NCBI GenBank assembly: GCA_004431415.1
Contig: QPMI01000058.1
Coordinates: 186,001 to 250,000, forward strand
DNA: 64,000 nucleotides
DNA from: Cyanophora paradoxa CCMP329
Lineage: Eukaryota; Plantae; Glaucophyta
Direction of reading: 5' to 3'
Notes under the pieces: model-generated
What the model was told of the DNA's origin: nothing
Database searches by the model: none
What the model saw: only the letters and a program-made list of their open reading frames with translations
In this document: piece after piece, positions 12,591-36,100 of the stretch
Layout: every line of letters starts with the position of its first letter
Position numbering within the stretch: position 1 is the first letter of the stretch
Program-made: the position numbers and the translations under genes

Positions 12591-15500
12591 TCAAGAAAAC
12601 TTTTTCTTCGTATTCTTCGGCCGCTGCGCCCCGAGAAGGGGTGCCGCTGCGTCTGCTAGCGCAGAGGTCGCAGGGCGCGTGCCGGCGGCGGGCAGCAGGC
12701 CGGCGGCCATGCGCGCCGCGCTGGCGCTCGTGCACGCGAGGGCCGCGGCGGCCGCCGCTGCCGCGGGCCTCACCCCCAGCACCACGCGCTGCAAAATGCG
12801 TCAATTATATATCAACGCGCAACGAAGCGCGAAAAAGACGAGGCCGCACGTTGTAGAGGGCTTGCAAGGCCTTGTAGAGGTGGTACGTGTGGGCGCAGGT
12901 GAGGTCCGAGTGGAGGCAGGCCTTGAGGGCCGCGTCGGGCGGGGCGCTGCCGCCGGCGCGGCGCCAGAGGTCCTCCCGCTTGAGGTGCTCGGCCAGCGGC
13001 TGCTTCACCGCCGCCGCGTCGGCGCCCGTCCCCGCCAGGTACCGGAAGATGAAACGCCGCAGGGCCACGCGCAGGTCCTCCAGCCGCACTCGCGGCGGTG
13101 CGCTTTCAGAAGACGATGCCGCAGCGGGCGCGGCAGCGGTGTCGAGGCCCTCGTGGAGGGTCCGCTCGGCGCCCTTGGGCAGCGGCTCCTTAAACTGGTC
13201 CGCCACGCCCTCCACAACCGCCTGCGCGGGCGTGAGTGCAGCAATCTTCTCGAAAAAGCAAGCGGCGGGCCTCGCAGCAGATGCCCTCGAGCTCCTCGTA
13301 GAGGGCGCAGACGTGCTTCAGCGCGAGGCCGCGGACCGAGGGTAGCGTCAGGAGCCACTCCTCCAGGGAATACCGCTCAAACTGCTGCGCGAACTCGCTC
13401 AGCAGCTGCTCCTCCGGCCACCGGCCCGGCACCCGGTTCAGCTGCGGCGGCGTCAGAAGCGCTCTAAAAGAGTTGAGCGGTGAGGGCGGACCGTGGAAAG
13501 GATGACGTCCATCGCGGACATGAGCCGCTGGCGCTGCTTCTTTAGCTCCTTGTCGGCCTGCACGCCGCTTCAGAGCAGAGCAGCGAAACGGAAGAGTGAA
13601 GGCGCGCCTCGAGGGCGGCGACGCTCTCGCGCGCGAGCGGCTCCTGCGGCACTTTCCCGTGGATCTCCTCCATTATCATACCGGCGCTGCGCGGCACGTG
13701 AGCCGCAGGAACAAAACAGCACTGGAGGAAGGTAGCGCCTGGGGAAGAGCTCGAGGTGGTAGACGAAGGGGCGGACGAGGGCGCGGGAACGGTCCTCAGG
13801 GTCTGCCTGCAGCAGCCGCCGCCCCGCGAAGGCGCGCGCGGCCAGCGCCGCCTCCGCCGCGCCGAAGTCGTAGGCGACGGCCCCGCGGCCGGCGCGGGCG
13901 AGGGCCAGGGATGGTAGCGCGTGCCGCTGCGCGAATTCGTCGTCCAGGTCGAACGTGCAGAGGTCCGCCTCCGTTGCATCCTGCAGATTCCTAAGCTCCT
14001 CAGACCATCACGCAAGCGCACACGACAGTGCACCTGAATGGCGACCTCGCCGAAGGCGGCGGCGGAGGTGGCGAGGAAGGCGACGGCGGGGTGGCCCCGC
14101 CGCGCGAGCGCCGCCGCCTCAGTCAGGAGGAAGTTCTGCACGCACGCGACCTGGTCCAGCCCGATGCAAAGGAAGAGCCTGCGGGCAGATCAGATGAAAT
14201 CGGGCGGCGAGCAGTAGGGCGCAAACCCGCTGTCCTTGCGCTCCGGGAGGCAGAGCGCGAGGGCGGCGTGCCGCGTCATCTCAGGCATCGTCAGCTCCGT
14301 GCACTCAAAGCGCGTGACCTCGGGCCGCAGCTCGTTCCACGCCGCTGCAAAAGCCTCGAAGGAGGCCTCCAGAAACTGACGGTCCTCCGGCAATCGCGGG
14401 CGCTTTTGCTCAGGATCGCGATCTTCGTAATCGATGAAGTCCCCGATCGTACGTGCGCCCGCATTTGCGCGCGTGACACTGTGCTCGAGTCGCCGCGACA
14501 CCTCGCACGACCACCTCGCGAGCGCCCACATGCGCCGCAGCGCCCCAACGCTGCCCTCGTGCTCGAGCAGCAGCGCCAGGACGGGGTTGCGCCTTGCGTT
14601 CTCGGGGCGCAGGCGGAAGGCGGCGCGGAGACCGTCGGCAGAGCCGGCGTGGACAGTGGAAAAGATGCGTGGGAGGAACCGTGGTGCGTAGTTGGCGTTT
14701 TGCAGCAGCGGCCCGAAGTCCTCTAGCACCTCGGCCTCGAGCGCGGCGGTTTGGTCCGCGTCGCTGGGCCGGCACGCCTCGCGCACGCGCGCCGCCTCTG
14801 CCGTGGCGCCGTTCTCGATGAGCGGCTGAACATACCGCCGCGCAAAGGCCTGCTCGAAGTCGCGCCGGGCCTTCGGCGATGCCATTGCGGCATGCGGGAA
14901 GGCGGCGCGCCCGCCCTCCAGCTCCGCCGCAAAGCGTCGGAGGACACCGTGCACCGCGAGGCAGATGGACGCGTAGTCGGCCGAGAGGATGCGCGACAGC
15001 GCGCCGACGTCGCCAGCGACGATGTCGAGGCAGTGTTTCGCGTCGCCGTTGAAGAAAAGAGCGCGGCCAGCGTCCTCGGGCAGCACGCCCGTGCGGGCGG
15101 CGGCCGCCAGCGAGAGGTACGTCAGGAGGTGCAGGACGCGGAAGGCAGCGGGGTGCAGCTCGCGCTCCGTGTGCCCCGCGGCGCGCAGCGTCTCAGGGTT
15201 CTCAGGGATGATGCCAGGACGGTCGGGGTCGACCGCTGGCTGGGCGGCTTCGTTGCCGGTCGCCGGCACGTGGTCCATGCCCCCCAGCGTCAGCCCACAG
15301 TTTGGGCACCGCACCGTCTGCATCGGTCGCCCGCATGCGCCGACCGAGTACCTGCACAATGGTCAGACAGCCAGAACAGTCGCAAAAACGCGGAGGCATT
15401 GCAAAAAGGCGCACCAGAAGCCGCAGGAGTGCCGGTACCACTGGTTCCTTTCTCCGTTGACACTCCTCAAGGCGCGGGCAAGCATCGCCTGGTCGTTGGA

Positions 15501-18500
15501 GGGGGCGGCCGGGACAAATAGCTGCGAGATGCGGCCGGGGTCCGCAAGAATGGCGTGGAACGGGGACGCGTCGGGCCCGTCGACCGTGAAGACGGAGGCC
15601 GCGTGGGCGAAAAGGGCGGCGAGGTGGAGGTCAAAGAGGTCACAGCCCGGTGCAACATCGATCCAGCTAGGCCGGGGCAGCGCGAGAGCGCCCGATGCTG
15701 GCGCGGCCTCGGGGGCGAGGAGTGTCCGGAGGATGCAGGCGGCTTGGCCACGAGGCGGGCGGGCCTCCAGCAGGTCGACGAGGACAGTGCGCGCGGTGGT
15801 TTCACGGTCCGTGAGTGCAGCAGAGCCACGGGAAAGGTAGAAGCGGGCGAGTGCGGCCTGCAGAAGGGCGCGATTGGCGGCGGCGTCGCCGTCGTGCGCT
15901 GCAATGACAAGCTCCTCGACTCCCTCGCGGGCCTGATTGAAGTTTAGAGGATTTACATTTAGAGGATTCCCAATCGCTTTCCAGTGCGGAGCCGCGTGCG
16001 CACCTCGCGAATTACGAAAGCGTCGAGCGCGCGATCCGCCGCGTCGTATTGCTCGTCGCCGGCGAAGGGGTCGACGTCAAGGCGGGAGGTGGCCGCGCGC
16101 CGCCACGGGAGGCGGCCCATCCAGGGCAGGCGCTTGTCCAGCACCTCGCCGCAGTGGGCACGCAGCTCCTTGAGCGGGAGGCCGTCCGCCTGCTGCCGCA
16201 CGGCCCGCAGGAGCGCCACTTTGGCCGCCTCCACGCGCGGCGCATTGGAGTCCAGCGCCTCCTCAAGCGCCTTTTCGAGATGCTCACACAGGTCGAAGCG
16301 GCCGCTGTTGGGCGTAAGGAAGGCTGCCACGGCGCGGACCAGCGCCCGCACAAATGCCGCGGCCATCGCCAGGCGGAGCGGTCTGCTGCTTGAAATGGCG
16401 GGATCAATAGCAAGGGTGCGGCAGGCCGAGCGGAGGCAGTTGGCAAGCTCGCGCGATGTGCGACTGCCTGCCGCGCAGGCGTCCGGCCCGATCCGAGAGT
16501 AATGCGATAGGAGGAGGACGTCGCAGACGAATGCCCATGCCTCGCTGTCGGCGGGGTGAGCGGCTTCATGCAGGGCGCCCTCTACGGCGGACAGGGCAAG
16601 CGACTCGGCGACGAGGGTAGGGCGAATGACGGCGTCGCCGAAGAGACCCAGCAGGCTCGATCGCGAGTCGTCCGCGTAGTCCTCAGCAGCCAGCGTGAGG
16701 AAGTTGCGGAGGACGACGGCGGCGCCCGCCGTCAGGTGCGGGCGGGCGCCGAGCAGCCGCCCCGCCACGAGGCGCAGCAGTTCGCGGTACCGGTCCATCG
16801 CAGCCTCCGAGTCCAACGCCACGTGGTTGGCCGTCTCGATGCAGCGAACGAAAAGGGCGCTCTCGAAGCGGTCGAGTGCGACCTCGTCCATGTGCTTCGC
16901 GTGGCCGTCGATGGCGCGCAATAGACCGGAGACGAAGGGTGGCGAGGCGAGCAGCGGGGCTCCGGTAGCGTCAGCCTCCGCCTCCTGCCCAAGGTCAACG
17001 ACCGCCCGCAGGATATCAGCGTGACACGGGTGCTGCTGCTGCGGCTGCTTGAAGCAGCCCGCCAGCTCTGTGCAGAGACGCAGGAGCTGGATCGGCGCTG
17101 TCGGCGGAACCTCGAAGGGGCCACCCGCCGAGATCTGTGCGATGACGAAGCGGGAGGCTTGGAGCCAGTCGGGCGAGGCGCCCGCGCGCGCCAGCACCAA
17201 TTTGCAGACGCGGTCTGCGATGAAGACGCGCGTCGCCTCCGCGCCATTAGCCACGCTGTCGCCAATGACTTCCTGCATGCCGACGATGCGAGAGCACGCA
17301 GCGAGGAGGGCCGTGCACGAAGAAGCCTCCTTGGCGCGACGCCACCAGAACGTGTGCACCTCCACAAAGCTGGCGAACGGCTCCGGGTGCAGAGAGCGCA
17401 GGAGCCACGCGACGACGTTGGCGGCTGTTCGCAGCTCCTGCGGAGACCTGCCATCGAACGTGGCACCATCATGAAACTGATGCCGGAAAGTGTCCGACAT
17501 CAAAGTCGCGGCGACCTGCGTCGCTTCAGCACTAAGAAAGCAAGCGGATCGCCGATTGCAAGACGACGCACGCTGATTACAAAGTCGGCGACGTAGTCTT
17601 CCACATTGCCGTAGGCCTCGGACTGCAAGACGGACGGCGCGGCGGCCGCGATCGCCGCCTGCAGATCCCGCAGGCAGTCGGCCTCGGCCGCCGCCTCCGC
17701 GGCCTCCTCGTCCGCCCCGTCTTCGGTGTGCCGCTGGCGCAGCGCCTCCATTTTCAGGCGGCAGCTCTCGCGAAACTCTTCGACCCGCGCTAAAACAGCG
17801 CGCGAAAGGGGCAGGCGGCGCGGCGGGAACGGCCCCTGCACCGCGTAGCCCTCGACCTTTGGGGCTGGAATGGCGGACAGGTCCTCCAGGTCCAGCTTCA
17901 GGTCGGTGACGATGGGATACCACGCGGCGGCAAACGTGTCCGGGCGCTCGACAAGGGTTGCGAGGGCCTCCTCCCGCTCGAGGGCAAAAACAATTTTGGC
18001 GAGCGGCGTCCGGATCTGGCGGCGCAAGAACTCCAGGATGGCGGCCCCCAGCGTCGTGGACATCGCCAGGTCCTGCAAAGTAACCAGAGCTATTGTAAGC
18101 AAGGCAAAGGCAAGACAGCTCTCTCTGAATGGCAAAGCAAACCTGGAAACTGGATGCCAGGCGCTGAGCCCAGAAGGCGTCGGATTCAGCGTCGCTCTTC
18201 AGACTCGACACGATGAGGCTTTTCAGGAACGTGCGCACAGAAGGCGAAGTGCGAATGCCCGAGATGATTCCCTTCACGTGGTCGATGGCGAGGTCTGACC
18301 GCTTGTAACGGACAGCTGAGAAGGCCCACTGCAGCACCTCGCCGAACAGCACGTCCAGGAGCCCACCCTCCTGCCCACCCTCGCGCTGCAGCAGCTCCGC
18401 CACCGAAGACTCGAGGAGGGGCGCGATGACCAGCGGCACGCGCCCCTCGGCGTCAACGGTGACGGGATCGAGAGAGTCGACAGTAGTCTGGCGCCACTGG

Positions 18501-21500
18501 CCGAGGTGGCTGAAGTCGGCCTTGCAAGCAGAGGACCGGTCGAGGTGAACAATGATGAGCGCGTGCTTTGGCGTCAGTGCTTTGCCCGTCTTTTCTGCCA
18601 CCGCAATGTACTCGTCACGGTGCTGATCCAGCAGGTACTTAGCGAGCGGAATGGTGGCACGGTCAAGCTGGGCCGAGCACTGCACGACCAGCAGGTCCTC
18701 GCCGGACTCTGCGCTCCAAAACGCCTTCATTCGAGACACGAAGTCCGACTCGCGCTTGATGGCGCCAAGGATGACGACCGACGGCTGCAGGGCGCCGGCG
18801 TTGACCGTGGGCGTCGGCTGCGAGAAAGTGTACACGATGGAGGTGATGCCGACTGCCCCGCCCCGCTTGGCGGGCTGCTCGCTCCATTTCGCGACAGCGC
18901 TTGACACGAACGCCGCCAGCGATCCATGCTCCTGTTCTCTGCGGTAGATCTCCGTGATGCGCCGGGCAGCATCGGGATCAGAGCCGAGTCGAGTCAGCGT
19001 CAGCCGGACGACGCAATCCTCAGTCATTGTGTCGATGAGATCCGCCTTGCATCGTTCCAGGACAATTTCGCGAGATTCAATGCGCTCGCCAGCGTAAAGT
19101 CGCACAAGAGAAGGCAATGTGTCCTGATTAAAACCGCAGAACGAGCGCTCCGGATGCTCAGAGACAAAGCTGCTCCCCTGCACAGTGCATGTCGATATAT
19201 CGTTGACCCAGTGCTTGAGAGTGCGAATGAGGCTCTGCTGTTCCTCCGTCAAGATGTCTTCGTAAGAAATCACCTGCTTCTCAAAGCGGTTGAGGAAAGG
19301 CGGATCTGCACACGAGGGCGGCGTTCAGAGGAGCAACAGCAGCAGCGCTGCAGCAGCAACCGACCTTGCTTCTCAACGTCATCGCGGTCTATGACGACGA
19401 TGCAACGGAACGATTCGTCGACGTGACACATGGGGTTCGAGTAAGCGCCCAGCGCAACGCGGCAATTGCGCTTATTATTGACGATGGAGTAGTTCTGATT
19501 GAGGGCGTCGTAAAGCGAGCCATACACGTTGAGGTCCTTCAAGATGACGCAGTTGCCCGCCTCCATCGACAAGATGATGCGACTAAGCGTCCGATACATA
19601 TAGTCTTCCGATCCGATGTCGTCGGGGAAGGAGGATCCTGGACGGCAAGTCAGTTATTGAACGGGAAAAGACATGCACCAAAATGCACCAACGATGATTA
19701 CAAGGCTACGGTTGCGCAAGGTGAGGACGGGCGCGAGCTCCTTCTGCAGGATGCCCATCGTGGCATCGCAGCCGGACGCAACGAGCAGATGCCGCGCCTC
19801 CGTGTCGAGCCAGTTCTCGCGAATCAGCTCCAGCACAGAAGGGCGTGCACGAACGTAGCCTGGAATTGCGCTTGCTTCGAGGTCAAGGTGCTTGACGAAC
19901 AGATCGACCATCTGCTGCGAGAGCTCCCATGATCCTCCCCCACGCAGCTTTGAAGTGGGAAGAGCCGACAGGCCACCGAAATTGCGGTGGAGGGCGCGCA
20001 GGACAGTTTCGAGCGTCTGCATGGGCGTGCCCGGCGGCTCTCGGGCCAGGCGCTTTACCAGGCTGAGTGTGCGTAAGCGAAACAATTCAAGCGACAGCAA
20101 CGATGCGCCCACCAGTAGTAATCGCGCAGGCCGTGGAAGTTTTCGAACTGGTTCTCCTTCATCCTCGTCTGGTGCTCGTGGTACGCCTTGGCGAGGCCAT
20201 GAAGCCGGGCGTCGTCGAGGATCGTCGCCCGCTCAACAGTGCCCCCGAAATAACTGTTCTCGGCTGCTGCTTGAGCGGACTCACGCCAGCCCTCCACAAT
20301 CGCCTTGGCAGTGTTGTAGAGATCATCGACGTCCGGCTCTGGGCGCGAGAGATGGATAGCCCGGTTCATTTTCGCGGGGTCGAGCTGCCAGTTCGAGATT
20401 CCGACGACGGCCACGTCTGGAAACACCTTTGGGTACCTGTGCCCAACGTCAGCTCTCTAAATAGACAGAAGCAACGTGCAGCGCACCCAGGCTCAAGCAG
20501 GGCGTGCAGAACCTTCAGCGGGTTGAAGCGGGAGATCTCCGCAAGCCCGACCTCATCCAGCAGCACGACCGGAATCGTCGCCGGGCGCTCCCGGTCGCCA
20601 TCGGCTCCCTGCTCGGACGGGTGTGACCCGTACTTGCGCGCCTTCTCGAAGACCTTAAGGATGCCGTCCGACGTCGACTGCTCGGAGCCCTGGAACGAGA
20701 CGAAGTACAGCTGCAACAGCGCAGACCTCAGAAAGGCGCGGCGAACGGAGATATCGATTCCGAATTACAGACCTGTGGCAGGGTGCGGAAGAACGGGTCC
20801 TTGCTGTCGGGCCCGCGAAGATTCGAGTAGATGAGGCGCATTGAGAGCGACTTGCTGCAGCCGGGCTGGAAAAATGTAAGTGCACAAAGAAAGCGCTCGA
20901 AAGAGGATGCAGGCCCCACCTTGCCAACGAGGAAGACGGGGATGCAGTGGATGATGCAAACAAGCAGGACGAAAACGTTCTCGAGAAGCGCCTCATTCAT
21001 CGCTGTTCCGGGAGGGAGCTCCATCCTCCGCAGGTAGTCCCACTGCTCCCACTGGATGATGTGCATCAGATGGTCCGCGGTTGTGTTCGGCTTGAACAAT
21101 CTTGCGAGGAGCTCGCGATACTTTTCGCGCGCGCTGCGCCCTGCCAGGCGGCTGTGGTAGCAGTGTGCCAGCGCCAAGACAACCGCCCGCACGCGAATCG
21201 ATGCAGTGGGCGGTTTCGTGTGATCATGATCTGCAGCACCCGCCCCGACTTTTGCGAATAACCATCGCACTCCCGCAGTCAGCGCGTCGACAGCTGTCGA
21301 CATCGTGTTTGCCTTGTCGATGTGCTCCCGAAGGGCCAGCAGACCAAGGAATTTTCCCATCAGGAAGATGCAGCGACGGACGTCACGCAGGCTGATGCTA
21401 GAGATCCCTTCAACGTCGGCCATAAAGTGCTGCGATGCCACGAGAAGACTCACAACCAGGCCTGCCGTCACGTTCGAGTCTCGGTGGCGCGGATCGGTAA

Positions 21501-24500
21501 AGAACTCGCTCGTCTCGACCATCGCGCAAATGTACTGCTCCTCGTCCGCGCGCGTCAGCGACCCGAAGTCCCACACGTAGTCCGCCAGCTTCTCGGGCAA
21601 AGGGTGCACGCGGTAGACGAGCTTCGACATCGGATCGTCACGTTGCTTTAGCTTCAGGCCGGCCTGCTGCTGCTTTGCCAGCTCCGCGGGAGTGCGCTTC
21701 TTGTACGGGTTGCATGCTGCAAGAAAGGCGATGTTGCGGGAGATGGGCCGGCCCTTGATGGTGTGCTGGCAAATGATCTCTCCCACAAGGCCAATCGAGT
21801 CGCTTGTATTAATCTCGTCCAGAAAGACCCAGACGGGCTGCCCAGTGGACGCTTGCTCCTCGGCTGCCTCAATTACTTTCTCAATATGCCAATCCGTGAC
21901 GCCAGCGTGGAAGTTCAATACCTCAAATCGAACTCCTGCGACCTTTGCCAGGAACCGGACCTGAGGCGGTCCGGGTCAAATCAAGAAGGCATGGCCGCGC
22001 CGAAGGACAATAGCGCACCAGGCTCGTCTTGCCGCAGCCAGTCTCGCCCATGACGACCACGGGCACGCGGGCGCGCACACGGGTCAGAATGAGGCCCATC
22101 TTGAGGAGGTTGTCGAGCGTCATCACGTAACCATCCGTTTCAATGTCGGTTGCGCGCGTGCTGGAAGACAACAGCCGAAGGAGGTGATCCAGCAGCTCGA
22201 TCGGCTTTAGCTTGCTATAGTCAAGAAGGCCGCGATCCTTGCCGAATGACTGCGTGCCAGCGTGAGTAAATTCAAACACGAGTCACAGGAAGGCAGCGCT
22301 GACCTGGCTCTCGAGGAGAAGCCTGACAGACTCAGGCACGCGCGCCGGGTCTCGGTAGAGGGCCGTGCAAGAGCCGACGGGGTGAAAGAGGACAAGCAGA
22401 TGGTTGTTCTCGTCGGCCGACCACTGAACCATGCGCGAAAATCGGTCCACGCAACGATCGATGTCGTCTTCGGCTGCCCCAAGACCAGGCACTGGTGCCG
22501 GCGTCTGAGCTTGCTTGAGGCTGGCGAATTCGGCCGCCATGTCGACGAGGGAGTCGAGCAGGAGCACGCGGACGTCGCTTGAAGCGCCGTGCATCGCGTA
22601 CGCGAGGTTCCGCACCCTGAAGAACGGGCTCTTGGAAAAGGAGACGAGCTGGCATGCGAGCACGTGGATGAAAGTTCGTAGGGCCGAGAAAGACGCGTTC
22701 CTTGAGACCCTAGGATGCTCAAAGAAGTACTTCCGCAGAAGAGCGCGGCATTCTTTCAGCGGAACAGCGCGGGCGCCGGATCCAGCGAGCTGAATGTCTT
22801 CAACCTGCAGCCGACCGCTGTCCAAAGCCTGCAGGTACCTGCAAAAACGATGAACGAGTGCTCAAGGGCTTCGAAACACTAAACAACGTTCGCACCTGCA
22901 GACGACCTGATCGGGGCTCGACGGAGCGATGCTGACCACGACGCGATCGACTGACCATTGGATGTGCTGTCGCTGCAGGCATCCGCAGAACGATAGGGCT
23001 GGAAGGAGAGAGCCGCTCGCTGTGTTGCTAATCTCGATGAACACGGGCAGATTCGGGAGGTGGAAGGTTTCGTCTCCTGCAGAAACGGAACGGAGGAAGA
23101 GCAGCTCGAGGAGAAAGAGGTTCAGCGCCTGAGGCGAGTCCACTTGGCCGATGTCGATGTGCAGAGCGTGTCTGGAAGCATTTAAAGTCAGCTCATTCAG
23201 ACGAACAGCGAGCGATTCGGAGCTGATGTGTCCGCAGATGGTAATGACAACCCTCTCGCGCCCCTGTCGAAGGCACTGCAGCCGAATCTCCTCGGACTTG
23301 CCGAGGCCAGCCGCCGCCGAAGTGTAGATAAAGATATTAGATAGTAGCTGCTCGGCAATCTCGCACAGAGATTCTTGACCGAGACCAGCCGTCGGAATAA
23401 CGGATGATGTAAAATCGGTGAGAATCTGCGACTGCTCGCCGGTTGCACCGCGGCGACAACAGATGACGGCGAGTCGGTACGGGTTGAATGCAGCTTCGTG
23501 CTGCAGCTGACGAACGCGGTCCGAGAGCTGGATCTGCAGCTGGTAGTCGAGCAGCTCGGCATTGACGATACAGAAGAGACGATCGTGGAACCCATTCTTC
23601 CACGCATTGCGGCAGCGATCGAGGAACAGCAACAAGTCCTCTAGAGTTGTTGCAGGCGAGCAGAAAAGCACCTGGCTGCGAGAGGGAATGCAGCCATCGT
23701 TCATGCAGAGCGAGAAGACAACGTTGACAACGTGCTCCGGACGGTCAACTGCCGCGATGAAGAGGCGGGCCCGCTCCGCGTGCTCTGCATGGTTTGCAGC
23801 GCCGGACTGCGGCCGGGGGAGGGGCGTCGATGCGGACGCTTGCTTGCTCTCTAAGCAGCGGAATACAAAGTCGGCAACTAGTTCGAAACAGGCCTCGGGC
23901 GTCTCCGTGTCCCGCAGCAGGTGCGCAGCTCTGCATTGCAAACGTGCCGACTTGACGCTCTGCACTGCGATGCTGGGCTCAAACTTCCGGACAAGGTTGG
24001 AGATCCGCACTGAGTCTTCTTCTGTCACGGTGCCGTCAGCTGCGTCGATGTAGTCGAAGATTGACCAGATTTGACGAGCTCTAAAGAAGAGAAGGGAGTA
24101 GTTGCGAGCGCGGGCTGAAGTCAGATCCGCCAAACACTTCTTCAAATGGTGCTTGAGCTGCGCGAGCATGCCCTTCAGATCTTTCATCCCGCGGGCAGTC
24201 TTTAACCACTCCCGGTAGTTTCCTGAGAGGCTCTGTAAATCGACAAGCACTCCGAGAACCTAGGATTGGGAGGTTTTAGAATTAGGAAGAAGACAGAAAA
24301 ATAATTAGAGCACCTCTTCGGCAAGAGAGCTTTCGTCGATGAACTGCTGCGAGAGAGCCTTCGATTCGAGCTGCTCCCCCTGCTCGCCACCTTGCCCGCT
24401 GTCACGATTGCGCGAGCTTAAAATGAGCAGTGCCCGGCTGCGAGTGTCCTGCAACTCGTTGAAGTCGATGATGCGGCTCGCCACGCCAGGGCGCTCAGAA

Positions 24501-27500
24501 GGGATTTCCAGATCGAGACGAGCAGAGCCGGCCGTCGCCGAAAAGCGGTACACGCCGCGATCGACTGCGTCCTTCACCGCACTCTTCGTCACTTCACTGC
24601 GGTTTGCGACGGCATCATACAGGCGCTGCAAGCCGTACAGGTTGACGCTGCAGCCGTGCACTTTTATCGCCATGCCCTTCTTGCCAGGCCGATCAAGCAG
24701 GGCCTTAACGAAGTCCGCCGCTGATGCATTTGAAAGCTTGAGTAGAGGCTGCAGGAATCGTCGGACATCGATTAGGTCCTTGAAATTCTCCTGCGAAAAA
24801 GCTCAGCTCTAATGTTTCACACGAGTTGCGTGGTTATAATCAGGCCAGATATCCGATCAGCTTACCGCATGGGAGAACATGTCGTTGTGCTCTTCAACTG
24901 CATCGATGAGATGGCGCAGCTCCTCGTTTTCACGACCAACTCGGTTCAAGAACCCGACAAGCTCTCGTCCATCCTTGGTTGCGATGGTCTTGATAATGGC
25001 AGCCGAGTCGGGACAGACATCTCGAAGGATCTGATCCGTTGAGCACTTCGCTTGCAAGGCTTCCCGAACGGTCAAGATTTCTGAGGAAAGCAGAGCCTCG
25101 GTGCGGCGGAGAGCTTCAGACTCGCGCTGGCTGGCAGCACAAGAAAACGTGTCGAAGCAGTGAAGCAGGTCCCGGCAAAGACTTGAAACCGATGACAATT
25201 TGAGGCAGACGTCGATGTTGCGCACAATCTCCTCACGGCGACGCTGCTGTTGTACTTTGTCAATTGAAGACAACTCGTACATGTGAGAACTTGCGCTCAA
25301 AACTGGAAGCAACGACTGGGCAATCTCCAGTTCGCGAGCAATGAAGTTGGCGTCTGTTACGAGCTGCCAATAACGCAGTAAGACGTGGACGTTGACAGGC
25401 ATGCAGTCCCGCATGAGAGCCGTCATATGATCCTTGTAACGCAGCCACGACGCAACGGTAGAACCTGCCATTCGTGTTTCAAAAGAATCATGCGACTGAT
25501 GCTCATTACGAGAGGCATCGATGTAGGAAGACTGAAGAATGTTGCGGAAGACGGTGGATGCGAAGAGCTGTGATACTGGCTTGGGAAGTTGTCCCAGAGC
25601 TGAATTGAAGGCCGAGACAACTGCATTCAAATTGCTGGAATTCGTGTCGGAAAGCTCGGCAAGAGACCGGTCGGGAAAATGGTGATGCTCCTCTGAAAGC
25701 GTTGTGCGCCAAACGCTGTATTGCGCTCCGTCTTCTTGGGACAACATTACGACTTGCCACGCAGCAAAAATCTCTCCCAACTCGTTGAGCTCATTACGAC
25801 GGCGCTGTGTGATGACTATCGCACTGTCCAGCTCCCCGCGGTCCATGCCAATACCTGCGGCTTCCAAGCACACTACAAAGCTGTCGATGTTGGAGGCTGC
25901 GAGTGTTTCGATAATTTGAACCGGGACCGTTTGCTGAACGACAGAGTGGCGAAGCGCGCTCAGGGCTTTGATGGCAGTTGCAACAATCTTGCTCGAGGAA
26001 ACAGCTGGATTTCCGCGAAGCTGCAGGGCAGCAGCCCAGAATTTACGTGCTCTGATGAGCGCCACGACAGTGTCCTCTTTCTCGAAATCGAGGAAGCGGA
26101 TGGAGTCAAACAGACAAGTAAGACACTCGTCCCGGATTCTGGAACGTAGAAAGGTAAGGAACGTAGCGCGCAACATTAAACAGTTAGACGCACCGCTGAT
26201 CGTAAAAGTCGGTTGATTGGAAGTGCGCTAGCACCAGGGCCGCTGTGTCTGGAATCTCGGCAGCCTTTGCGATGATGGCCGAGCAGCCTTTGACGAAAGC
26301 CGCACGGATCTCGTCGCACCAGCGCAAATTTGTTGCGTCACTACGGCCAGCGAACCGGACCGAACGTAGTATAGCGTCATCGGTATGCTTCCGGCAAGCC
26401 TCCCATGCATAATCGAGAATAGCAGGATGGCGGCGAGCCTGAGGAGGCAGTTGGTCGATAGCGTTGAAGACTGAGAGAGGATTCGCATCTGCAACAAAAG
26501 CGTGTCATAAGTGTTATCAAAACGGAGAATAGAAAATTTTCGACAAAACGAAACGCACGTGCGCTGAATGCTTCAACACCAAATGCCTTTTTGAGGAATT
26601 TACGAGTGCACTCGATCAGCCGTGAAATCGACTTGTCTCCAGACCGAGCAGCAGTGAGCTCCAAGAGAGGAAGATGGCGTTTGAGGTCGGCTCGATCACA
26701 ATACTCGATTACAAGCTCCAGTGGCCGCCAGATGATATTATCAGGCAGCAAGGAAGCATACAGATCATTCCGCATCAAGGAAGGCAGCACGTCCTGAATG
26801 CTCAAGAATGCGCCGGAGCTTCGAACGGAGAGCTTTTCGAGGAGAAACTCTTGCACTGCATCCGCAACAATGGGGTCGAGCCCGCGGGGAAGCCGTGCAT
26901 AGCAATCGAGCACAGCTTGAAGTCGAGCAGCACCACGAAGAGCAGACAGAATGACGAATTTACGGTTTGGAAACACGCTCTGAAGCTGGGCGAGTAGCTG
27001 AGTGGTTGATGTCTGCTTTTCCCAGAGACTTCTCTCCACTGCAGGCCACCACAGATTAGCGACGTCGACCAGCGAGTTGATCGATGGAGCGTGAACGAAG
27101 AGCGCTTTCAGAACACTGAGGAAGCCGGTGAAGCTCAAATGTGCGAGATGAGGTTGAACGGCCTTGGCGGTTTCGACGAAGTGCCCGTGGAAACCTTGAC
27201 GATCGCGATCGGTGTGCGAGTAAGTCTGCGGCAGATCGAGAAGAAATGACAAGTCGAGGCCCAGGGCTGATTGGGCAGCAATGGAGAACATCCAAGAAGC
27301 CGGATCCAGAGCGGAAGCCGTACGAACGAGAAAGAGCAGAGTTTGTTGTGCAACTGCCTTGTTGCGCTCGTCCGTGAGCTGCAGGTCTCGGAATGCACTC
27401 GAGCCATGGTACAGGGATGACAGAAGCATGAGAGCCAGAGGCCCGCGGACCGTATACTGCAATTGCACATTTGGCGTGTCCAGCATCTGCACGCATTATA

Positions 27501-28973
27501 ATAGCAATAAGTTTAAATAAAAAGCATAATGGATATGATGTCAAGGCAAACCATCTGCCAAGATGCAGCAAGGAACAAAGCAGTGTCTGCGCGAAGCTCT
27601 TGCCTGGGAAAAGAGGCTGCGAAGGATTCTTAATAATTGCTAAATACTCTCATTGAGTTTCAGTGATCATGGGCGCACCATTCATTCCATTCAGACTCTC
27701 GGGAAGCCGGAGAACGTGACCGCAGACGAACGATAAGAAATTCTGGATCTTGTTTCCGAACCTCACGTAATTGTAAGGAGATCCAGAACGCCAGACTTCA
27801 AACTGCGCGAGCATCACTAAATGCTGAAAGGCTTACGACAGAAGTTGAAACGCTCACGTGATCGCGCAGTGACTGCAAGAGTACAACTCGCGCCATGATA
27901 CGATCAGAGAGAAGAGAGAAGAAGGACTCTGGGATCCATTTATCCCACTCCTCCAAATACATAATGTGGCGCAGGTACAGAACAGTGGGATCTTCGGACG
28001 TGTTGGAGATGTTCAGGTCGGTTAGATTGGACTGGAAATTCATATCGAATTGGAGCGGTCCGGGGCGTGTCACACGATTGATGCCCGGCGGATCCTCCCA
28101 GACATGAACAACAGAACCAGAATCGGACTTGAAGCCAAAAAACTTTGCTGCGGACTTGACGAACTTGGCCCCGACAGACTGGCTGCGCTCAGGATGCGGA
28201 AGGGAGATATACTTGTACTCGACTGGCTGATCCGCAGGAAGTTCGACAGCATCAGAGATCCAAAGCGACTTGCGGACATGGTGCAGCTGCACGACACGAT
28301 CTTCGTCCTTGCCCCAGTCGCCGAGGGAGAGCGTGTTTCCAGTAACGAAAAAGGTTCCTTTCTCTTCCGCCTTGATTGGAAGAAGAAGCAGGAAGCACGT
28401 CTTGCGCGTTTTGGGGAGGACTGGAGCTGCAGTTGCAGCTGCAAGGCTGCATGTGCAAGTTCGTCAGATGCCAAAAAAAAGAAATCGTTGAGACTTGACT
28501 CACGTGCAGCTGACAGTCGACGTGGGAACAGGAAGTGCGGCTTCGGCCGTTTCGTGTTGGACATCCGTCAAGGGCGTGGCGCCGGCGTCACTGCAACACA
28601 GAAAATAGTTGATTAGAGGCGACTTTGAGCTTGATCATGAGATTTGAAGTAATATAACCACCTTGAGCTTGAGCTTGAACTTGAATCTCCCGTTTCGGAT
28701 TCCGACGTGCTGGTTCATCGATGCAGAAGAAATTAGAACAGAGAACAAAAATTAATCGAAATATTAATCAAGCAGAAAGAGCGCACTCCGAGTCGATTGC
28801 AGGCACACTGGTACCGGCAAGCCGAGATCTAGAGGCAGATGACCTGAATATTGATCAGTCGACAAATTCAATTGGCCACGATTACAGAGTTTTATTATTT
28901 CTCACCCATCAGATGGAGGCCTCGTAGTGCTCTTCTTCTTGACCTTGGGCTTCTTCTTCGATCTCTTTCCCAT
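12591..28973 (-). CDS. RNF213/mysterin-like giant AAA+ ATPase E3 ligase (CBM20, stalk, dynein-like AAA core, E3 module with RZ finger, C-terminal domain)
   Basis: CBM20-like segment FFVTGNTLSLGDW...LWISDAVELPADQPVEYKY...WE at about 28060-28400. RNF213-type AAA motifs: SAAAGLGKS, PVVVMGETGCGKT, WVFLDEINT, YRVHPLP, SLRDVRR, PVFLVGK|PGCSKSLS, SFQGSEQSTSDGI, VVLLDEVGLAE...PLKVLHALLE, GISNWQLDPAKMNR, FHGLRDYY, YGSLYDALNQNY. RZ finger at 15270-15440. The probable first exon is MGKRSKKKPKVKKK (ATG 28973, less certain), and the last exon ends ...TKKKFS* at 12591. Confidence 0.93.
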
Positions 28974-29179
28974 TGCTGGCCTTCGCGTGATTTCAGTTGG
29001 AGTCAGTCAGAGCTCGGCGTGCAAAAAAAGGGAAGGAAGGAAGCGAAGAATGATCGAAGATCTAGAAATTGAGAAGTGCGACGACATCTTGCAATTGGCA
29101 TACACCGGAGAGAGAGAAGCGGACGTCGGGGGAAGGGGAAGGAGGAAGGGGAGGAAGCGGACGTCTATATTTGATTTAA

Positions 29180-29720
29180 AATGTCTGGGGGAGGGGGAGA
29201 TGAGGGGAGGAGAGCGGGGTGGCAGGAGAACGAGAGTGGTACAGCGAGAGGGGGTGGGGGAGCTCGAGGGTGGGCGAGAGAGAAAATCGACTCCGGGTAA
29301 CGAGGGGAGGAGGGGGGTACGAAGGGGGAATGTGGTAAGGGTACAGCCGGGGAAGAGGGGTTCAGAGGTAAAAGGAGGATCCGGGGAGGTAAAGGGGTTC
29401 AGAGGTAAAGGGGTTCAGCTACAGCGGGGAGGGAGAGGGGGTACGGTAGGGGGAGGGGGGTACAGTGGGGGAGAATAGGGAACAGGTACAGCCGGGAAGG
29501 GGGCCACGGAGGAAAAGGGAGGAGAGGCGGCAGAGAGGGAGAGGGGGTACGGCGGGGAGGGAGGGGGATACAGTGGGGGAAAGAGAGGTACGGAGGAAAG
29601 GGGAGGAGATGGGGTACGGCGGAGGAGGGAAGGGGGTACGGGGGGAAGGGGAGTGGTGCGGCGGGGGAGGTGTACGGCGGGTGCGCATTAAGGGGAAGAC
29701 TTACGAAGAGAGGAGGACTT
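29180..29720 (+). repeat. Purine-rich (G/A) low-complexity tract with repeated GG(G)TAC motifs in the divergent intergenic region
   Basis: The + strand is strongly G/A-biased, with many G-runs and repeated ggtac/gggtac motifs. Confidence 0.7.
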
Positions 29721-30784
29721 GAAGGACTTGTGAGAGAGGAGGAAAGACAGTACGCTTGTACAATCACGACCGACCTGACAGCAGTGTCATCATTATCGCG
29801 ACATTATCATCATCATGAGAGTATGTACCTCGAGCTAACAAACAGAAATCTGCCGGTGGTGCGAGGCCGGCCTCCGGATCCAGTCGGTCTGACTTCCTGA
29901 TGATAACGTCAGCTAATGATTAGGGCGATTTGACTGGACAGGTCAAGTGACCCGACGTGCCTTCCAAGGCCTTGGCCTTGTTTCGTCGGGCGTGATCTGT
30001 GCCGCGCATCACTTGTATCAGCATGCGCGGCCGCTGGAGCGAGGCGAATGTGGATGCACACCGGGACCGCGCGCGTTCGGCCGCGCTCGCGTGCACCTCG
30101 AGCTCCAGTCGCCTGCAAGCGCGCGTTCGCGTCAGCCTTGTTTGCGTTCGGGTCCCGAGCTCGAGCTTGGAGCGGTCACATCGTCTGCCGGCCGCGGACG
30201 GAGCCGCTGAGCCTAGACCTGACGCGGGCACCTGACGAAACCTTGAGAAGCAGAAAGTCTTAAACCTGCAAGATTTGCGTCAAGCGCGCTCAGAAAACGA
30301 GATGGCGGGCCCGGACAGGCCGCCGGATGCGTCGGCCGCGGCCGACCGCGCCGAGCGGTCAAGTAAAGCGGACCTCGTTCGACGAAGCAGTAAACCTTCT
30401 GGTCACAAGATCTGCGCAGCGCGCGCTCAGCGGGCGGGCGTCCAGCGAAGGACGGGCGGGCTAGACGGCAAATGGGGCGTGCTCCTGACGGGCGCTGGCT
30501 TGCTGGAGGCGTCCCTTGCAAGCAAATACGATGGCTAAAGCACCTTTCCGAAGATCGAAGACAGAGGGAGCGAGCTGCGCGCCTTACTTCTGCGGTCGCC
30601 TTCGCCTGACCTACAATCTCAGCTGCCGCCCCCGCCCCCCCCTTCCCCCCCCCCCCCCCCCCCCCCCCCCCCTTAAGCTTTTCGGTCGAAGTTCAGCGGT
30701 CAGGAGGCGTCCCACAGCGGTCAGGCGGCGTCCCCGGCATCGGCCACCGGTCGCGCAGTCTCGTCCGGGAATCCAGCGATATCG

Positions 30785-32753
30785 ATGGAATGCAGCCGGT
30801 GCAAGCAAGAGCGACCATCGGGCGATTACGTTCTCCGCAGGCTGAACTGCGGTCATATCCCTATCGCATGCGTCCAGGTTCGTAAGCGCGCTCAACCTGG
30901 ACCGGATCGAATCTGACCGGACCTGACCACGCGCTCCCGCAGTGCCTGGCCAAGGCGAAGCACTGTTCTCTGTGCACGGCCGGTTTCAGCGAGGACGACC
31001 GCGCGTCGCTGGAGGAGAAGTTGCGCGAGCTGGACGCGGTGGCGCTCTTCAGCAGCGCCCCGGCGGCCCGCGCCGCGCCCAGCGAGCCCGGCTACGTGTT
31101 CCATGTCATGTCAATGGACGGTGGCATGCAGCACGTTCAACTTGGCGACGCCGCGTCGTGCCTGGACCTCAAGCGCGCGGTGGAAAGAGTCTTCCGCGTG
31201 AAACCGGAGCACCAGCGGCTCTTTCTCGCGGATGACAGCAACGTTGAGATCAAGGTGCGCCCCGCGTGCTCGAAAGCTCTGCGTGTCTCGCTCATACGCG
31301 CGCTTGCTCCGCAGGCGCTCAAGAACGGGACGCCTGCGCCGATTGCCGGCTCGCCCCTGACATCCGGCGACACGCTTCTGCTGCTGCGCGTCTACTCGGA
31401 GCACGCCGGCCAGACCGACATCGCAGGCGCGGCGCGGGACAAGCACGGGAACGCGCTCGGCAGCAGCTACGACCTGGGCGTGGACAGCGCGTTCCGCGGC
31501 ATGACCATCGCGGTGCTGCACGAGTTCATCGGAACTCGTAAAGACTTCGACTTCGCTTTGCCTGAGGCGGCGCTTCGGGAGAAGGGCTTCACCGTCCACC
31601 GCTGGTCGGACCGCATCCCCGCGCTCGAGGAGTTCAGCGCCGTCCTCGACCGCTCCTGCCAGCTCTGGATCACGTCGGACAGCCGTGATCGCGGCCTCTC
31701 GGACGCCCACATCCAGCGTATCCGCCGATTTTTCAGCGAGGGCAGAGGGGTGTACATATGGTGGGCTGCCTCTCATTCGGGGTCGCTCTTTGTTCTTTGT
31801 TTGCTCTGACTCTTCTTCCAGGGGCGACAACGATCCGTGGTACTTCGATGCGAATCGGATCGCGAAGGCTCTCTTTGGCGGCAGCATGTCCGGCTGCCTG
31901 CCGGGTATGAAGGTGGTACAGCAAGGTACTTCGAATTCATTTCAGCCCATACCCCCCTCTCCCTTGCCACCCCATTCGAATCCCCCCTCCCCCTCCCCCC
32001 CCCCCCCCCCCTATGTCCTCCGAAACAGTATCCCCCTTCCCCTCTAGATCTTCTTTCTGCCTTTCTCGATCGATCGCGACCTCATTGCCATCCGACACCG
32101 TACCCCCTCTCGTTTGCCATGACCCCGCTCCGCACCCGTACTCCACCGTGCTCCCTCGCATCGTAAAATGGCGCTGGCTAGCCCCCCCCCCCCCCCCCCC
32201 CGGTCCCCGCCCCCCCTCTCTAGCACACTGTACCCCTCGTTTTAGCGCAATCTACCCCTTTTCTCTCCCCGCTCCTTTGAACCCTTGCTTTTGCCTCGTC
32301 CCCTAGTTCTAACTTCGATTTTCGCAGCTCCGAAAGGGACGCCAACGTCGGGAGCAGCCCCTGGGGCTGGCGGCTTCGTTCCACACTTCATCACAACAGG
32401 TACTGTTTTGCCACTTTTTCTACTTTTTCGTTCTTGCCTCATCGTGCCCGACGTAGGTGTCGCGCGTCTCTACGAGGGCAATACAATTGCGACGATCGCG
32501 CCACACCCGCACCTCCACGCCCTCGTCCGAGGCTCCGAGGGGAACGTCGTGACGGCTATCTACGATCGCGACGGCCGCCGGGCCGTTCTCGACGGAGGCT
32601 TCACGCGCATGTATGCCGACTACTGGGATGAGGCGGGCATCGCGCGGTACGCACCGCTGCCCCCACGTCCATCTTGCTTCTGCCCTGACCTCTTCCCGCA
32701 GATATGTAAAGAATGCGGCAGTGTGGCTCGTCAACATTGAAAACGATTACTAG
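30785..32753 (+). CDS. RING finger - ubiquitin-like domain - class I GATase-like (ThuA/GldG-like fold) domain protein, 7 exons
   Basis: Exons are 30785-30877, 30943-31254, 31315-31760, 31822-31925, 32328-32399, 32457-32646 and 32702-32753, all joined by GT-AG introns in frame. RING: MECSRC-x15-CGHIPIACVQ|CLAKAKHCSLC. Ubl: FHVMSMDGG...DLKRAVERVFRVKPEHQRLF...GDTLLLLR. C-terminal domain: GSSYDLGVDSAFRG...QLWITS...IRRFFSEGRGVYIW|GDNDPWY...LYEGNTIA...LDGGFTRMY...RYVKNAAVWL. Confidence 0.85.
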
Positions 32754-33102
32754 AATCGTTTTCAAAACCTTGGTTTCAGGTTGCATGCTTGCATACTTGG
32801 TTTCATGTTTGCATCAGTTCTAGCTAAAGGCTGCACTTCCCTTTCGAACTCCAACGTTAACCCTCCCAGTTTCTTATTAATTTAAGTCGACGTCAGAAGT
32901 CCAATCGACATTTTGTTGCAATTGATCATGATGTGCTGCGCTCGAGCTCGAGCTCCCCTCTCTCCCCTTATAATTACCCTCTTCCTCCTTCCCCGACCCT
33001 CTTCAATTTAATGCTTGTCCCCCTCCGCGCGGCTCCGAGCTCAACGGGATGTGCTCTGATTCCCTGGATATTGGGGGACTGGGGACGGGGCGGGGGCCGC
33101 GG

Positions 33103-36100
33103 CTAGCGCTTGCGGGGCGGGGTCTCTCGGCGGACGGCCGGCGGGGGCGCGGGGCGCCCTGCGGTGACGGGCACCGGGCGGGAGGCGGGCACTCCGGCCG
33201 AGACCAGCGGGGGCCTCCCCGTCGCCGGCGCTGACTTGGGGATGGGGGGTATGGATCCGGAGCGGGGAGGGGGGCCCGAGCCGTTCGGGCGCCCAGGGGC
33301 GGTGGAGGGCGGGCTCGAGGTGGGGGAGGGCTTGGAGAGGATACTGGCGGCGCCGGCGGCGCCCGCGATGGGCCCGCTCACGGCGCCGTAGGGGGTGTTG
33401 GGCGGGGAGGAGCGCGCGCCCGCGCGGGGCGCCACGCCGTACGCGGCCGACGCCGCCGTGACGCTCTTGGCGCCGCCGCCGGGCGGGGGCCCCGCGCCGG
33501 CCGCGCCGGCCGCGCCTGCGCGAGGTCAGCGGTGCTGGCGCGGCTGGAGCGCGCGGGGAGCAGAGGGCCGGGCGCACTGGTGCGGGGGGAGGCGAAGAGG
33601 GAGGAGGAGGCGCCGGAGGCGGAGGCGGCGGCGGCGGCGGCGGCGGCGGCGACTGACGGGGTGATGCTGCCTGGGCCCGGGGCGGCCGGCGGCAGGCACG
33701 GCGGGGCGGGCGGCGGAGGAGGGCAGGGCGGAGGGGCCGGCCCGGCGGGCGGGCGGGAGGCGGCGGATGCGGAGGCGGAGGCGAGGGACGAGGCGGCGGG
33801 GCGGAGGCGTACCCGTTGGAGGGGGTACGGCGGCGCCGGCGGTGCTGCCGGACGGGGGGCGGCGCGGGGCGGCGGAGGCGGCGGCCGCCGCGCGGGCGTT
33901 CGCGGCGGCGGAGGCCGTCGAGAGGGAGGCGGAGGCGGAGAGGGTACGGCGGAGGAGCCGGAGGCGGAGGGGAAGGAGGGGGCGGGGCGGTGGGCCGCGA
34001 GGCCCCGCGGCAGCGGCGGCGGCGCCGGCGAGGGCCGACGGGCGGAGGCCGAGACCCGCGGCGGCGGAGGCGGAGGCGGCGGCGGCGGCGGAGGTGGCGG
34101 CGCCGGCGCCGGGGCGGGCGTACCCCGCGGAGCCTGACCCGCCCTTCTGGGGTTCGACGGTGTAGCGCCGGCGCCCGTACTCGGGCTTGCCCTTGTCCGC
34201 AGCCATCTCGCTCTCCTCCTGGACAGGACGTCAGCGCGGGGCGGGGCGGGGCGCCGGGAGCGGCGGCGGAGGCGGCGGGGTCGCACGTCGGCGATCATCT
34301 GGTCCTCCTCGGCGGCGCGCTGGGCGTCGACGGCGTCGTCGGCGCTGTCGAGCGGGCTCGGCAGCGGCTGCCCGTCCTTGCCCAGGATCGTCGTCCGCAC
34401 GGGGATCTTGCACATCCGCTCCTCGGCCGCCGCCGCCGCCGCCGCCACGTCCCGGTCCTTGTCCCCGCGCAGCCGCGACGCGCAGTCCTTGAGGCGGTTC
34501 AGGAGCGCCGAGTCCCCCGGGAGGCGCAGCACGCCCTTGAAGGTGGCGAGGAGGCCGCAGGCGCGGAGGCGGACGTTGGGGACGGGGTCCCCGCAGAGGT
34601 CCAGGGCGGGCTCCAGGAACGACTCCTTGAAGAAGCGCCGCGAGAAGACGGCGAGGACGGAGGAGCAGAGGTCGAGGAAGGTGGAGCGGAGCCAGTAGGA
34701 GCGGCCCCGCGCGAAGTCGCGGACGAGCCGCTGCACGAGCTCGGCCCGCTGCAGCCGCCACCGGTTCTTGCGGACGAGCACGCAGACGGTGCGCGTGGCG
34801 GCGACCTTGACGGGGTTCGCCCCCGTCGACATGTAGCGGAAGAGCAGCGGCATGATGTGGTCGTAGATCGTCTCCGAGGCGTAGAAGGCGGGGAGCTTGT
34901 CGAGGTGGGAGAGGAGCTTGACCTGCCGCCGCCAGCTGAGCGCCGTCGCCTGCTCCAGGGCCAGCACGGCGGGGAGGATCTCGCCGTAGGCCTGCTTCTT
35001 GAGCTCCTCGGAGGAGACGGCGAAGAGCGGGAGCGTGGCGTCGAGGGTCTCCATGATGGCGTCCTGCACGTCGACGCTGTCGTCCTGGAGGAGCCGGAGG
35101 AACGGTTCCCTGAGGTACTTGGCGACCCGCTCCTTGCCCAGCATCGAGGCGATCTCGTGGAAGCCGGCCGCCGCCGTCCGCCGCACCAGCGGGTTCGGGT
35201 CCGTGCAGAAGTTCACGAAGTGCGGGTGGAACCTGGCGGCCGCGGGGTGAGGGGGGGGCGGGGGCGGGGGAGGTGGGGGTACGAGGGGGAGGGGGGGGAG
35301 GAAGCACGCACGTGTTGGTGTACCAGACGTACTTCTTCGCGCCGAGGCTCTTTAGGACGGCCTGCGGGGGCGCCGGGCGCCGGGCGTCAGGCGCCGGACG
35401 GGTACGGGCCCCACGCGAGCCGGTCCGGTCGGTCGCACCGGAAAGTTCCACGCGCAGAGCCGCCGGGACTCGGCGTCCAGCCGCTGCACCCGCCGCGTAA
35501 GAAGGAAGAAGAAGAAGGAGAGAAGGAGAAGAGGCAGAGGGAAAGAGAGAGAGAAGCGAGGGCGGGGCGGGGCGGGGCGGGCGGGCCTGGGACATGATCT
35601 TGAAGAAGTCGTAGAGGAGCTGCCCCTCCTCGTCCCCCTCCAGGTCCGGCCCCGCCTTCGTCAGGATCTCCCCGATCGAGCCGACGACGACGCGCGCCAT
35701 GTCGTCCCCGCCCAGCGACGCGAACGAGGCCGACAGGCTCGCCTGCTGCTGCTGCGTCGGCGCCGCCGCGATCCCCGCCGCGCAGTGCTGCTTGATCAGG
35801 GGCAGGATCTGCTGCTTCCTCGTGTCCTTGTCCAAGAAGTCGAGCAGCGCGACCACAGCCTGCGGAGATCCCACCGTCAGCCGAGCGGAGAAGAGCGGGG
35901 GCGGGCGGGCTCGAAGGCGGGCGGGCGGGCCTGGAAGGCTGCTTCCTTGACCTCGGCCTCCTCGTCTCTCAGAAGCTCCATCAGCTCGTTCAGCAGCGGT
36001 CCCTTGGTCCTCTCCAGCCTGCCGCCCCACGCCCCGCGCCCCGCATCAGCCGCCGCCGCCCTGCCCGGCCCGGCCCGGCCCGCCCCGGCGCACCCGACGC

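Follow-up and report, generated by a model that had tools for sequence, protein, structure and literature searches.

Work on the giant ubiquitin ligase RNF213 has centered almost entirely on mammals, in which it coats intracellular pathogens and ubiquitylates them, and ligases of the parkin type are known for carrying a ubiquitin-like domain and RING-type zinc fingers in one polypeptide. Here, we describe a locus of the glaucophyte alga Cyanophora paradoxa CCMP329 that recalls both systems. It lies at positions 12,591 to 32,753 of a window of 64,000 nucleotides (contig QPMI01000058.1 of assembly GCA_004431415.1, positions 186,001 to 250,000; all coordinates below are those of the window), and it holds an RNF213-like giant gene on the minus strand, head to head with a plus-strand gene whose protein joins a RING-like finger, a ubiquitin-like domain (Ubl) and a domain of the class-I glutamine amidotransferase (GATase)-like fold. 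In the reading that we favor, with a probability of roughly 0.65, these are two transcribed genes, the giant without a RING, that probably share a promoter and were duplicated once as a block. The arrangement suggests co-regulation, and the small protein does not appear to be the supplier of a "missing" RING. We found nothing in the literature on RNF213 in Cyanophora or on non-animal relatives of RNF213. New here are the leader exons and close transcript starts between the two genes, a second adjacent pair in the same genome, the RING-less state as the norm among relatives, and the unnamed family to which the C-terminal domain of the neighbor belongs.

A spliced RNF213-family gene without a RING

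The minus-strand gene is genuine and spliced, and it belongs to the RNF213 family, whose members are giant ubiquitin ligases with an AAA+ core and an RZ finger. An earlier note, made from the letters of the window alone, had proposed an RNF213-like gene of about 16.4 kb with a CBM20 module, an AAA core, and an RZ finger, and each of these parts was recovered (Table 1). Between about 28.4 kb and 12.8 kb, the pieces of reading frame on the minus strand are collinear with full-length relatives, which are 4000 to 5000 residues long. The EukProt model of the gene (P0001, tig00000219_g19493) maps to 24790-12594 and so lacks the 5' third with the CBM20 and the stalk, while comparison with the Cyanophora paralogue P0145 and with other relatives extends the coding sequence upstream of 24790; exon boundaries between about 28790 and 28463 were not placed in our model. 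Pfam recognizes the CBM20 in the translation of 27801-28463 of the minus strand (E=1.5e-6, 28.4 bits against a gathering cut-off of 23.3), and the AAA core carries Walker A/B pairs in two AAA units and is 40-69% identical to relatives. A profile of the E3 region, built from 34 relatives and covering the ~1100 residues that end with the RZ finger, matches the structures of human and mouse RNF213 in PDB at E=1e-101 over profile positions 23-1237, and these ~1200 positions correspond to the RNF213-type E3 module (E3-back, shell, and core). The AlphaFold model of the same region (mean pLDDT 79) had RNF213 structures as its seven best Foldseek matches.

The RZ finger (HSC...ACGRP...CPNC...GGMDH) keeps its zinc ligands (H-x-C...C-x2-C) and also the Cys of ACGRP and the His of GGMDH, which correspond to the residues proposed as nucleophile and general base in human RNF213 (PMC11549300). 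In Cyanophora, its first zinc ligands (15446-15414) are spelled H-x-C, whereas the spelling is C-x-C in most fungal, fern, and metagenomic relatives and C-x3-H in animal RNF213, and in these alignments the spelling is a lineage marker within the finger. A 1104-residue open reading frame at 15962-19273, considered as one exon, was rejected, as its middle is a GC-rich, out-of-frame read-through across two introns; the true coding sequence inside this region runs in another frame, at 18198-17503.

The E3 module of the giant has no RING, and the earlier note had likewise seen none. No RING family was found by Pfam at E<0.1 in P0001, in the Cyanophora paralogues P0145 and P0002, or in the closest foreign relative, P0003. 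The 810 residues that separate the AAA core from the RZ finger are free of CxxC motifs, and Cys and His together reach a maximum of 6 per 60 residues in that stretch, versus 11 in a hemichordate RING. When the relatives are aligned, the hemichordate proteins P0091 and P0110 and two mollusc proteins have a Cys-rich, RING-like insertion at one site, which is missing from the alga and from all other aligned relatives; the algal reading frame at this site is continuous and homologous, and the AlphaFold model is all-helical from residue ~90 to ~1000, the site included. One might object that a RING or a U-box-like E2-binding element was overlooked, either in an unannotated exon or by being too degenerate for profiles, and the gene models of this genome are indeed imperfect, as P0001 is short of its 5' third and the EukProt model of the neighbor contains a false exon. 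The unbroken homologous frame, the absence of CxxC motifs, the four negative profile searches, the helical model, and the same Pfam absence in 32 other relatives all argue against such an oversight, which we consider highly improbable.

The lack of a RING appears to be nothing unusual in this family. Pfam detects a RING within the 1000 residues before the RZ finger in only 2 of 34 RZ-bearing relatives, both of them hemichordate "rnf213-alpha-like" proteins, and the RZ finger itself is visible to Pfam in 32 of the 34. The RING-less relatives include Glomeromycota and Endogone fungi, the fern Ceratopteris, and metagenomic, possibly protist, proteins. Judging by these sequences, the RING-less form is the commonest state among relatives outside animals, and the RING, as an insertion, marks the animal branch rather than the wider RNF213 family. 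In mouse RNF213, replacement of the RING (residues 3941-3999) by a linker left auto-ubiquitination at the wild-type level (PMC7311170). Since the RING marks the animal branch and the mouse protein is active after losing it, no outside supply of a RING is needed, and the proposal of the earlier note that the RING missing from the giant may be provided in trans by the neighbor is not supported. By analogy with mammalian RNF213, the conserved Cys of the giant's RZ finger would accept ubiquitin from an E2, the activity of the giant would be controlled by the binding of ATP in its AAA core, and its CBM20 may contact glycans; RZ-finger chemistry of this kind would need no RING.

The neighboring gene and its three-part protein

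The open frame of the plus-strand gene, with its N-terminal finger split by an intron, lies exactly where it had been read from the letters. Six GT..AG joints on the plus strand, present in contigs from three RNA-type runs and absent from a DNA-type run, join seven exons into one open frame of 422 residues. The EukProt model of the neighbor (P0137, g19494) departs from this RNA-supported model in a single internal segment (residues 312-343), with a false exon (32047-32148) that has no RNA support, and it overlooks a small intron at 32400-32456. Searches and fold prediction were run on the database proteins P0137, P0138 (its Cyanophora paralogue), and P0139 (from outside Cyanophora), and the joined 422-residue model was used for the frame check only. 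Pfam gave no match on single open reading frame pieces of the neighbor, and its domains become visible only through the database models and the RNA-based model. Both genes are transcribed, and transcripts from the giant's side and from the neighbor are both present in RNA runs X1 and X5.

The finger of the neighbor follows the pattern C-x2-C-x15-C-x-H-x4-C-x2-C-x6-C-x2-C (C3, C6, C22, H24, C29, C32, C39, and C42), and all eight Cys and His residues are invariant in all three known fusion proteins, P0137, P0138, and P0139. Its H-to-C spacing of 4 is one more than the usual 2-3, the AlphaFold pLDDT of the region is 55-67, and Pfam RING profiles score it weakly, with E values of 0.2-0.9 (zf-C3HC4_3, E=0.22; zf-RING_5, E=0.33 over the full profile). 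The C3HC4 pattern behind the RING of the earlier note thus stands, but the profile scores make "RING-like" the fitting term. The ubiquitin-like domain that had been placed after the finger is supported by the Pfam ubiquitin profile PF00240 (P0139, E=1.5e-5 with a score of 25.1 bits, just under the cut-off of 25.4; P0138, E=9e-4) and by PDB, in which positions 81-128 of our Ubl profile (A4) match residues 1-48 of ubiquitin and NEDD8 is also matched.

The C-terminal ~250 residues were modeled by AlphaFold with pLDDT values of 80-96, and Foldseek matched them to the GIFT domain of IFT52 (5FMS/5FMR; E=6e-7, TMt 0.65-0.70) and also to the ThuA-like protein 1T0B and to TrpG; a feature search agrees with a GIFT-type fold. 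The uncharacterized GATase-like domain of the earlier note is therefore supported as a predicted fold, without the nucleophile Cys. No Cys is invariant among 66 aligned members of the domain family, so that the amidotransferase nucleophile was not found, and a WGDN motif follows strand 280-285, about where the nucleophile elbow would be expected. The invariant polar motifs of the domain are DLxVD, WGDNxP, DAN, EGxTIA, DGGxTR, and VKN. There was no match of the domain to Pfam IFT52_GIFT, ABC_transp_aux, or ThuA at E<=1, and its likeness to GIFT is one of fold and features only.

This domain belongs to a family of at least 1700 relatives that has no Pfam or NCBIfam name. The best 120 are nearly all ~300 residues long, the few members with a named organism are all bacterial (Myxococcota, Persicimonas, and Fluviicola), and the standalone members that we inspected start with a hydrophobic leader; the feature search for the domain also returns a rotifer cluster. 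Gene neighborhoods of family members in Persicimonas and Fluviicola showed no common context. Family members share 51-62% identity with the eukaryotic fusion protein P0139, a level that suggests gene transfer between these ~300-residue relatives and the fusion protein. The C-terminal domain of the neighbor would most likely derive from a bacterial gene that became fused to a RING-Ubl module. As for its role, we can only speculate that the domain could bind a protein, as does the GIFT domain of IFT52, which does not bind sugars (PMC4818760), or that its target, to be bound or acted on, could be a small ligand or a glycan.

The space between the genes and their linkage

The two genes had been described as divergent and about 1.8 kb apart. 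Their head-to-head arrangement and the distance between their start codons stand, but the gap is not empty, as it holds spliced exons of the minus strand. RNA contigs from X1 and X5 show eight minus-strand joints between 28841 and 30544, none of which occurs in the DNA run X16; seven of the eight have CT..AC ends on the plus strand, and the joint 29895/29960 is without canonical ends. The joined exons contain no long open reading frame upstream of the candidate ATG of the giant. On the simplest reading, they seem to form a multi-exon 5' leader (~1.7 kb) of the giant's mRNA that reaches at least 30583, with the join from leader to CBM20 exon inferred across ~28160-28790, a stretch covered by no contig. 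The contigs of the minus strand extend to 30583 or beyond and those of the plus strand start at 30685-30701, so the apparent transcript starts are ~100 bp apart or less and flank a poly-C tract. This closeness favors co-regulation of the pair, which we consider likely, and the two genes probably share a bidirectional promoter, under which both transcripts would begin around the one poly-C tract. Further long poly-C or C-rich tracts are found in the 402-nt intron of the neighbor, at 31958-32020 and 32180-32215.

The same combination of genes is adjacent a second time in the Cyanophora genome. P0145 (tig00020892_g14920, 3666 residues) shares 71% identity with P0001 across 3426 residues, P0138 (tig00020892_g14919) is 70% identical to the neighbor P0137, and the gene numbers are consecutive in both pairs (g14919/g14920 and g19493/g19494). 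Only these two members of the neighbor family were found in Cyanophora, each adjoining an RNF213-like gene, and the third RNF213-like paralogue (P0002, tig00000093, 47% identical) lies on another contig with no known partner. The two adjacent pairs are best explained by one old block duplication after which both genes were kept in both copies, and they therefore count as a single independent association. Four RNF213-like loci of other origin (L006, L008, L009, and L010) had no relative of the neighbor in the surrounding 7-10 kb, and a scan of metagenomes with the RING-Ubl part returned no relative and no further fusion locus. The only fusion protein from outside Cyanophora, P0139, is encoded on 1.9-kb contigs that hold that single intron-free gene. 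These results do not bear out the expectation that RNF213-like and RING-Ubl genes would be found side by side across genomes. The notion of a co-regulated pair fares better, with the close transcript starts and the second adjacent copy in its favor.

The two-gene block is bounded by repeats, as had been noted before: a 1.41-kb direct repeat flanks it on both sides, with copies that are 95.3% identical over 1416 nt (blastn) and spaced 22.4 kb apart, and it may be the mark of a local segmental duplication or rearrangement. Apart from the Cyanophora locus, intron-free RNF213-like AAA proteins of ~4200 residues (P0151, P0171, and many similar ENA/Logan clusters) occur on contigs of 386-741 kb with a GC content of 0.39-0.41, at positions 1-402 and 10001-22579 of L009 and 10001-22585 of L010. 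One such contig carries a gene for a Pox_A32 packaging ATPase, and these contigs may be giant-virus genomes. A local model found no RZ finger in P0151 and P0171, and among 108 other proteins listed, 11 had an RZ match, mostly a weak one.

Our preferred reading, a transcribed head-to-head pair with a probable shared promoter that was duplicated once as a block, has several points against it. No contig links the leader exons to the coding exons of the giant, so that the leader could be a separate divergent non-coding transcript, and the contigs end at the poly-C tract, which makes the transcript ends there bounds and not true starts. Contigs also carry no expression levels, and their depth cannot show co-expression. 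In the second pair, the orientation and spacing of g14919 and g14920 are inferred from the consecutive gene numbers only, and a genuine partnership in function would also be in keeping with two copies that each retain both genes at ~30% divergence.

The two genes could be unrelated neighbors in a gene-dense region that were copied together by segmental duplication, a view that draws on the reduction of the whole linkage evidence to one duplication event, on the local rearrangement suggested by the flanking repeat, and on the failure to find the linkage at the four other RNF213-like loci or in the metagenome scan. Transcript starts as close as these usually share regulatory DNA, however, and both genes appear to be intact in both copies after ~30% protein divergence, with the reservation that the P0138 model is garbled in its middle and its intactness uncertain, so that we regard a purely incidental adjacency as rather unlikely. 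At the other extreme, the locus might encode a dedicated two-component ubiquitin system. The neighbor would then serve the RNF213-like ligase as an adaptor, as a receptor for ligands, or by recruiting an E2, and the two would act jointly, for instance on bacteria, viruses, or targets that bear glycans. Transcript starts within ~100 bp of each other, the position of both known Cyanophora members of the neighbor family beside RNF213-like genes, the retention of both genes at matching divergence (71% and 70%), and the place of both proteins in ubiquitin biology would all fit such a system, as would a CBM20 in one protein and a fold frequent among sugar-handling proteins in the other. It is opposed by the single independent association, by the partnerless paralogue P0002, by the lack of neighbor relatives at the four foreign loci and of further fusion loci in metagenome contigs, and by RING-less fungal and fern relatives, for which no such RING-Ubl partner is known; moreover, the GIFT domain of IFT52 is itself not sugar-binding. 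We consider a dedicated system of this sort unlikely, and some functional coupling of the two genes is possible but doubtful. A more specific version, in which the bacterial-derived domain would sense a glycan or microbial ligand and the Ubl or RING would couple this sensing to RZ chemistry, making the neighbor the ligase partner in an ancient two-component, cell-autonomous defense of a glaucophyte, is speculative and unlikely.

Table 1. Positions of the features of the locus and its flanks within the window
Feature	Position	Strand	Basis or remark
Direct repeat, left copy	10665..12074	.	blastn
RNF213-like giant gene, coding span	12594..28973	-	EukProt model and collinear relatives
Giant gene, candidate ATG	28973	-	MGKRSKKK...; first long open reading frame only from here in joined RNA-supported exons
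Giant gene, stop	12594, or possibly 12805-12807	-	12594 from EukProt model
CBM20 carbohydrate-binding module	28197..28355	-	PF00686, partial profile match, positions 17-69 of 97
Dynein-like AAA core	20537..23317	-	Pfam AAA, AAA_5, AAA_7
AAA core, motif GLGKSE	23317-23288	-	
AAA core, Walker A GETGCGKT	22048-22025	-	
AAA core, Walker B FLDEIN	21834-21805	-	
AAA core, second Walker A PGCSKS	20865-20842	-	
AAA core, second Walker B LLDEVG	20569-20537	-	
Site of the animal RNF213 RING in the E3 module	16808..16930	-	unbroken helical stretch in the alga; alignment around RING of P0110/P0091
RZ finger	15270..15446	-	PF20173, E=1e-13 (Pfam on P0001); split by 63-nt intron 15414-15352
Spliced leader exons, probably 5' untranslated region (UTR) of the giant	28700..30583	-	contigs of RNA runs X1/X5
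Leader exons	<=28843, 28906-28980, 29705-29774, 29829-29895, 29960-29996, 30062-30112, 30232-30265, 30374-30411, 30544->=30583	-	
Presumed shared bidirectional promoter region	30584..30684	.	flanked by contig ends
Poly-C tract, 44 nt	30629-30672		within presumed promoter
Neighbor gene, coding sequence	30785..32753	+	422 residues, 7 exons; RNA-supported joints, open frame
Neighbor exons	30785-30877, 30943-31254, 31315-31760, 31822-31925, 32328-32399, 32457-32646, 32702-32753	+	
Neighbor UTRs	5' reaching <=30685, 3' reaching >=33023	+	
RING-like C3HC4 finger (residues 1-45)	30785..30984	+	split by intron 30878-30942, after codon 31
Ubiquitin-like domain (residues ~80-162)	31087..31395	+	spans intron 31255-31314; internal, without C-terminal Gly-Gly
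C-terminal domain (residues ~175-422)	31432..32750	+	predicted class-I GATase-like (GIFT/ThuA-like) fold
Direct repeat, right copy	33078..34473	.	overlaps minus-strand open reading frame with HEAT repeats (33381-35216)

The locus beside known systems

Mammalian RNF213 (mysterin; PDB 6TAX, 7OIK, and 8S24) resembles the algal protein in its N-terminal CBM20, in a dynein-like core of six AAA units that has two Walker A/B pairs, in an E3 module that is homologous over ~1200 residues, and in an RZ finger with catalytic Cys and His. The algal protein differs in being shorter, in lacking the RING insertion, in an identity of less than 25% in the E3 region, and in having H-x-C instead of C-x3-H as the first RZ zinc ligands, and what it does in the alga may be proposed by analogy. 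The locus strengthens the view of the RNF213 family as old and widespread, with the RING as an insertion of the animal branch, in agreement with the biochemical work in which the RING proved dispensable.

Closer to the alga in their make-up are the RING-less relatives from Glomeromycota, Endogone, Ceratopteris, and metagenomes (for example, A0A9N8W8Z4 and A0A8T2VM01), which likewise have an RZ finger and no RING and some of which (P0146 and P0244) also have a CBM20. They are annotated only as hypothetical or "RZ-type domain-containing" proteins, and in contrast to the alga, none has a known neighbor with RING-like, Ubl, and GIFT-fold domains. If the two proteins do work together, the neighbor would be the first cofactor candidate to come from genome context, and with its 422 residues it would offer a tractable handle on RNF213-type ligases in unicellular eukaryotes.

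The GIFT domain of IFT52 (5FMS and 5FMR) and the ThuA-like protein 1T0B share with the C-terminal domain of the neighbor a class-I GATase-like fold without a catalytic Cys (TMt 0.58-0.70), and the domain differs from them in its own invariant polar motifs and in an identity of only 12-16%. It leads to a large, strongly conserved, and unnamed family, a member of which was apparently taken into a eukaryotic protein of the ubiquitin system. Compared with parkin, finally, the neighbor has the order of domains reversed, with the RING-like finger before the Ubl, a single C3HC4-like finger in place of the RBR arrangement, and a GATase-fold domain of bacterial type attached.

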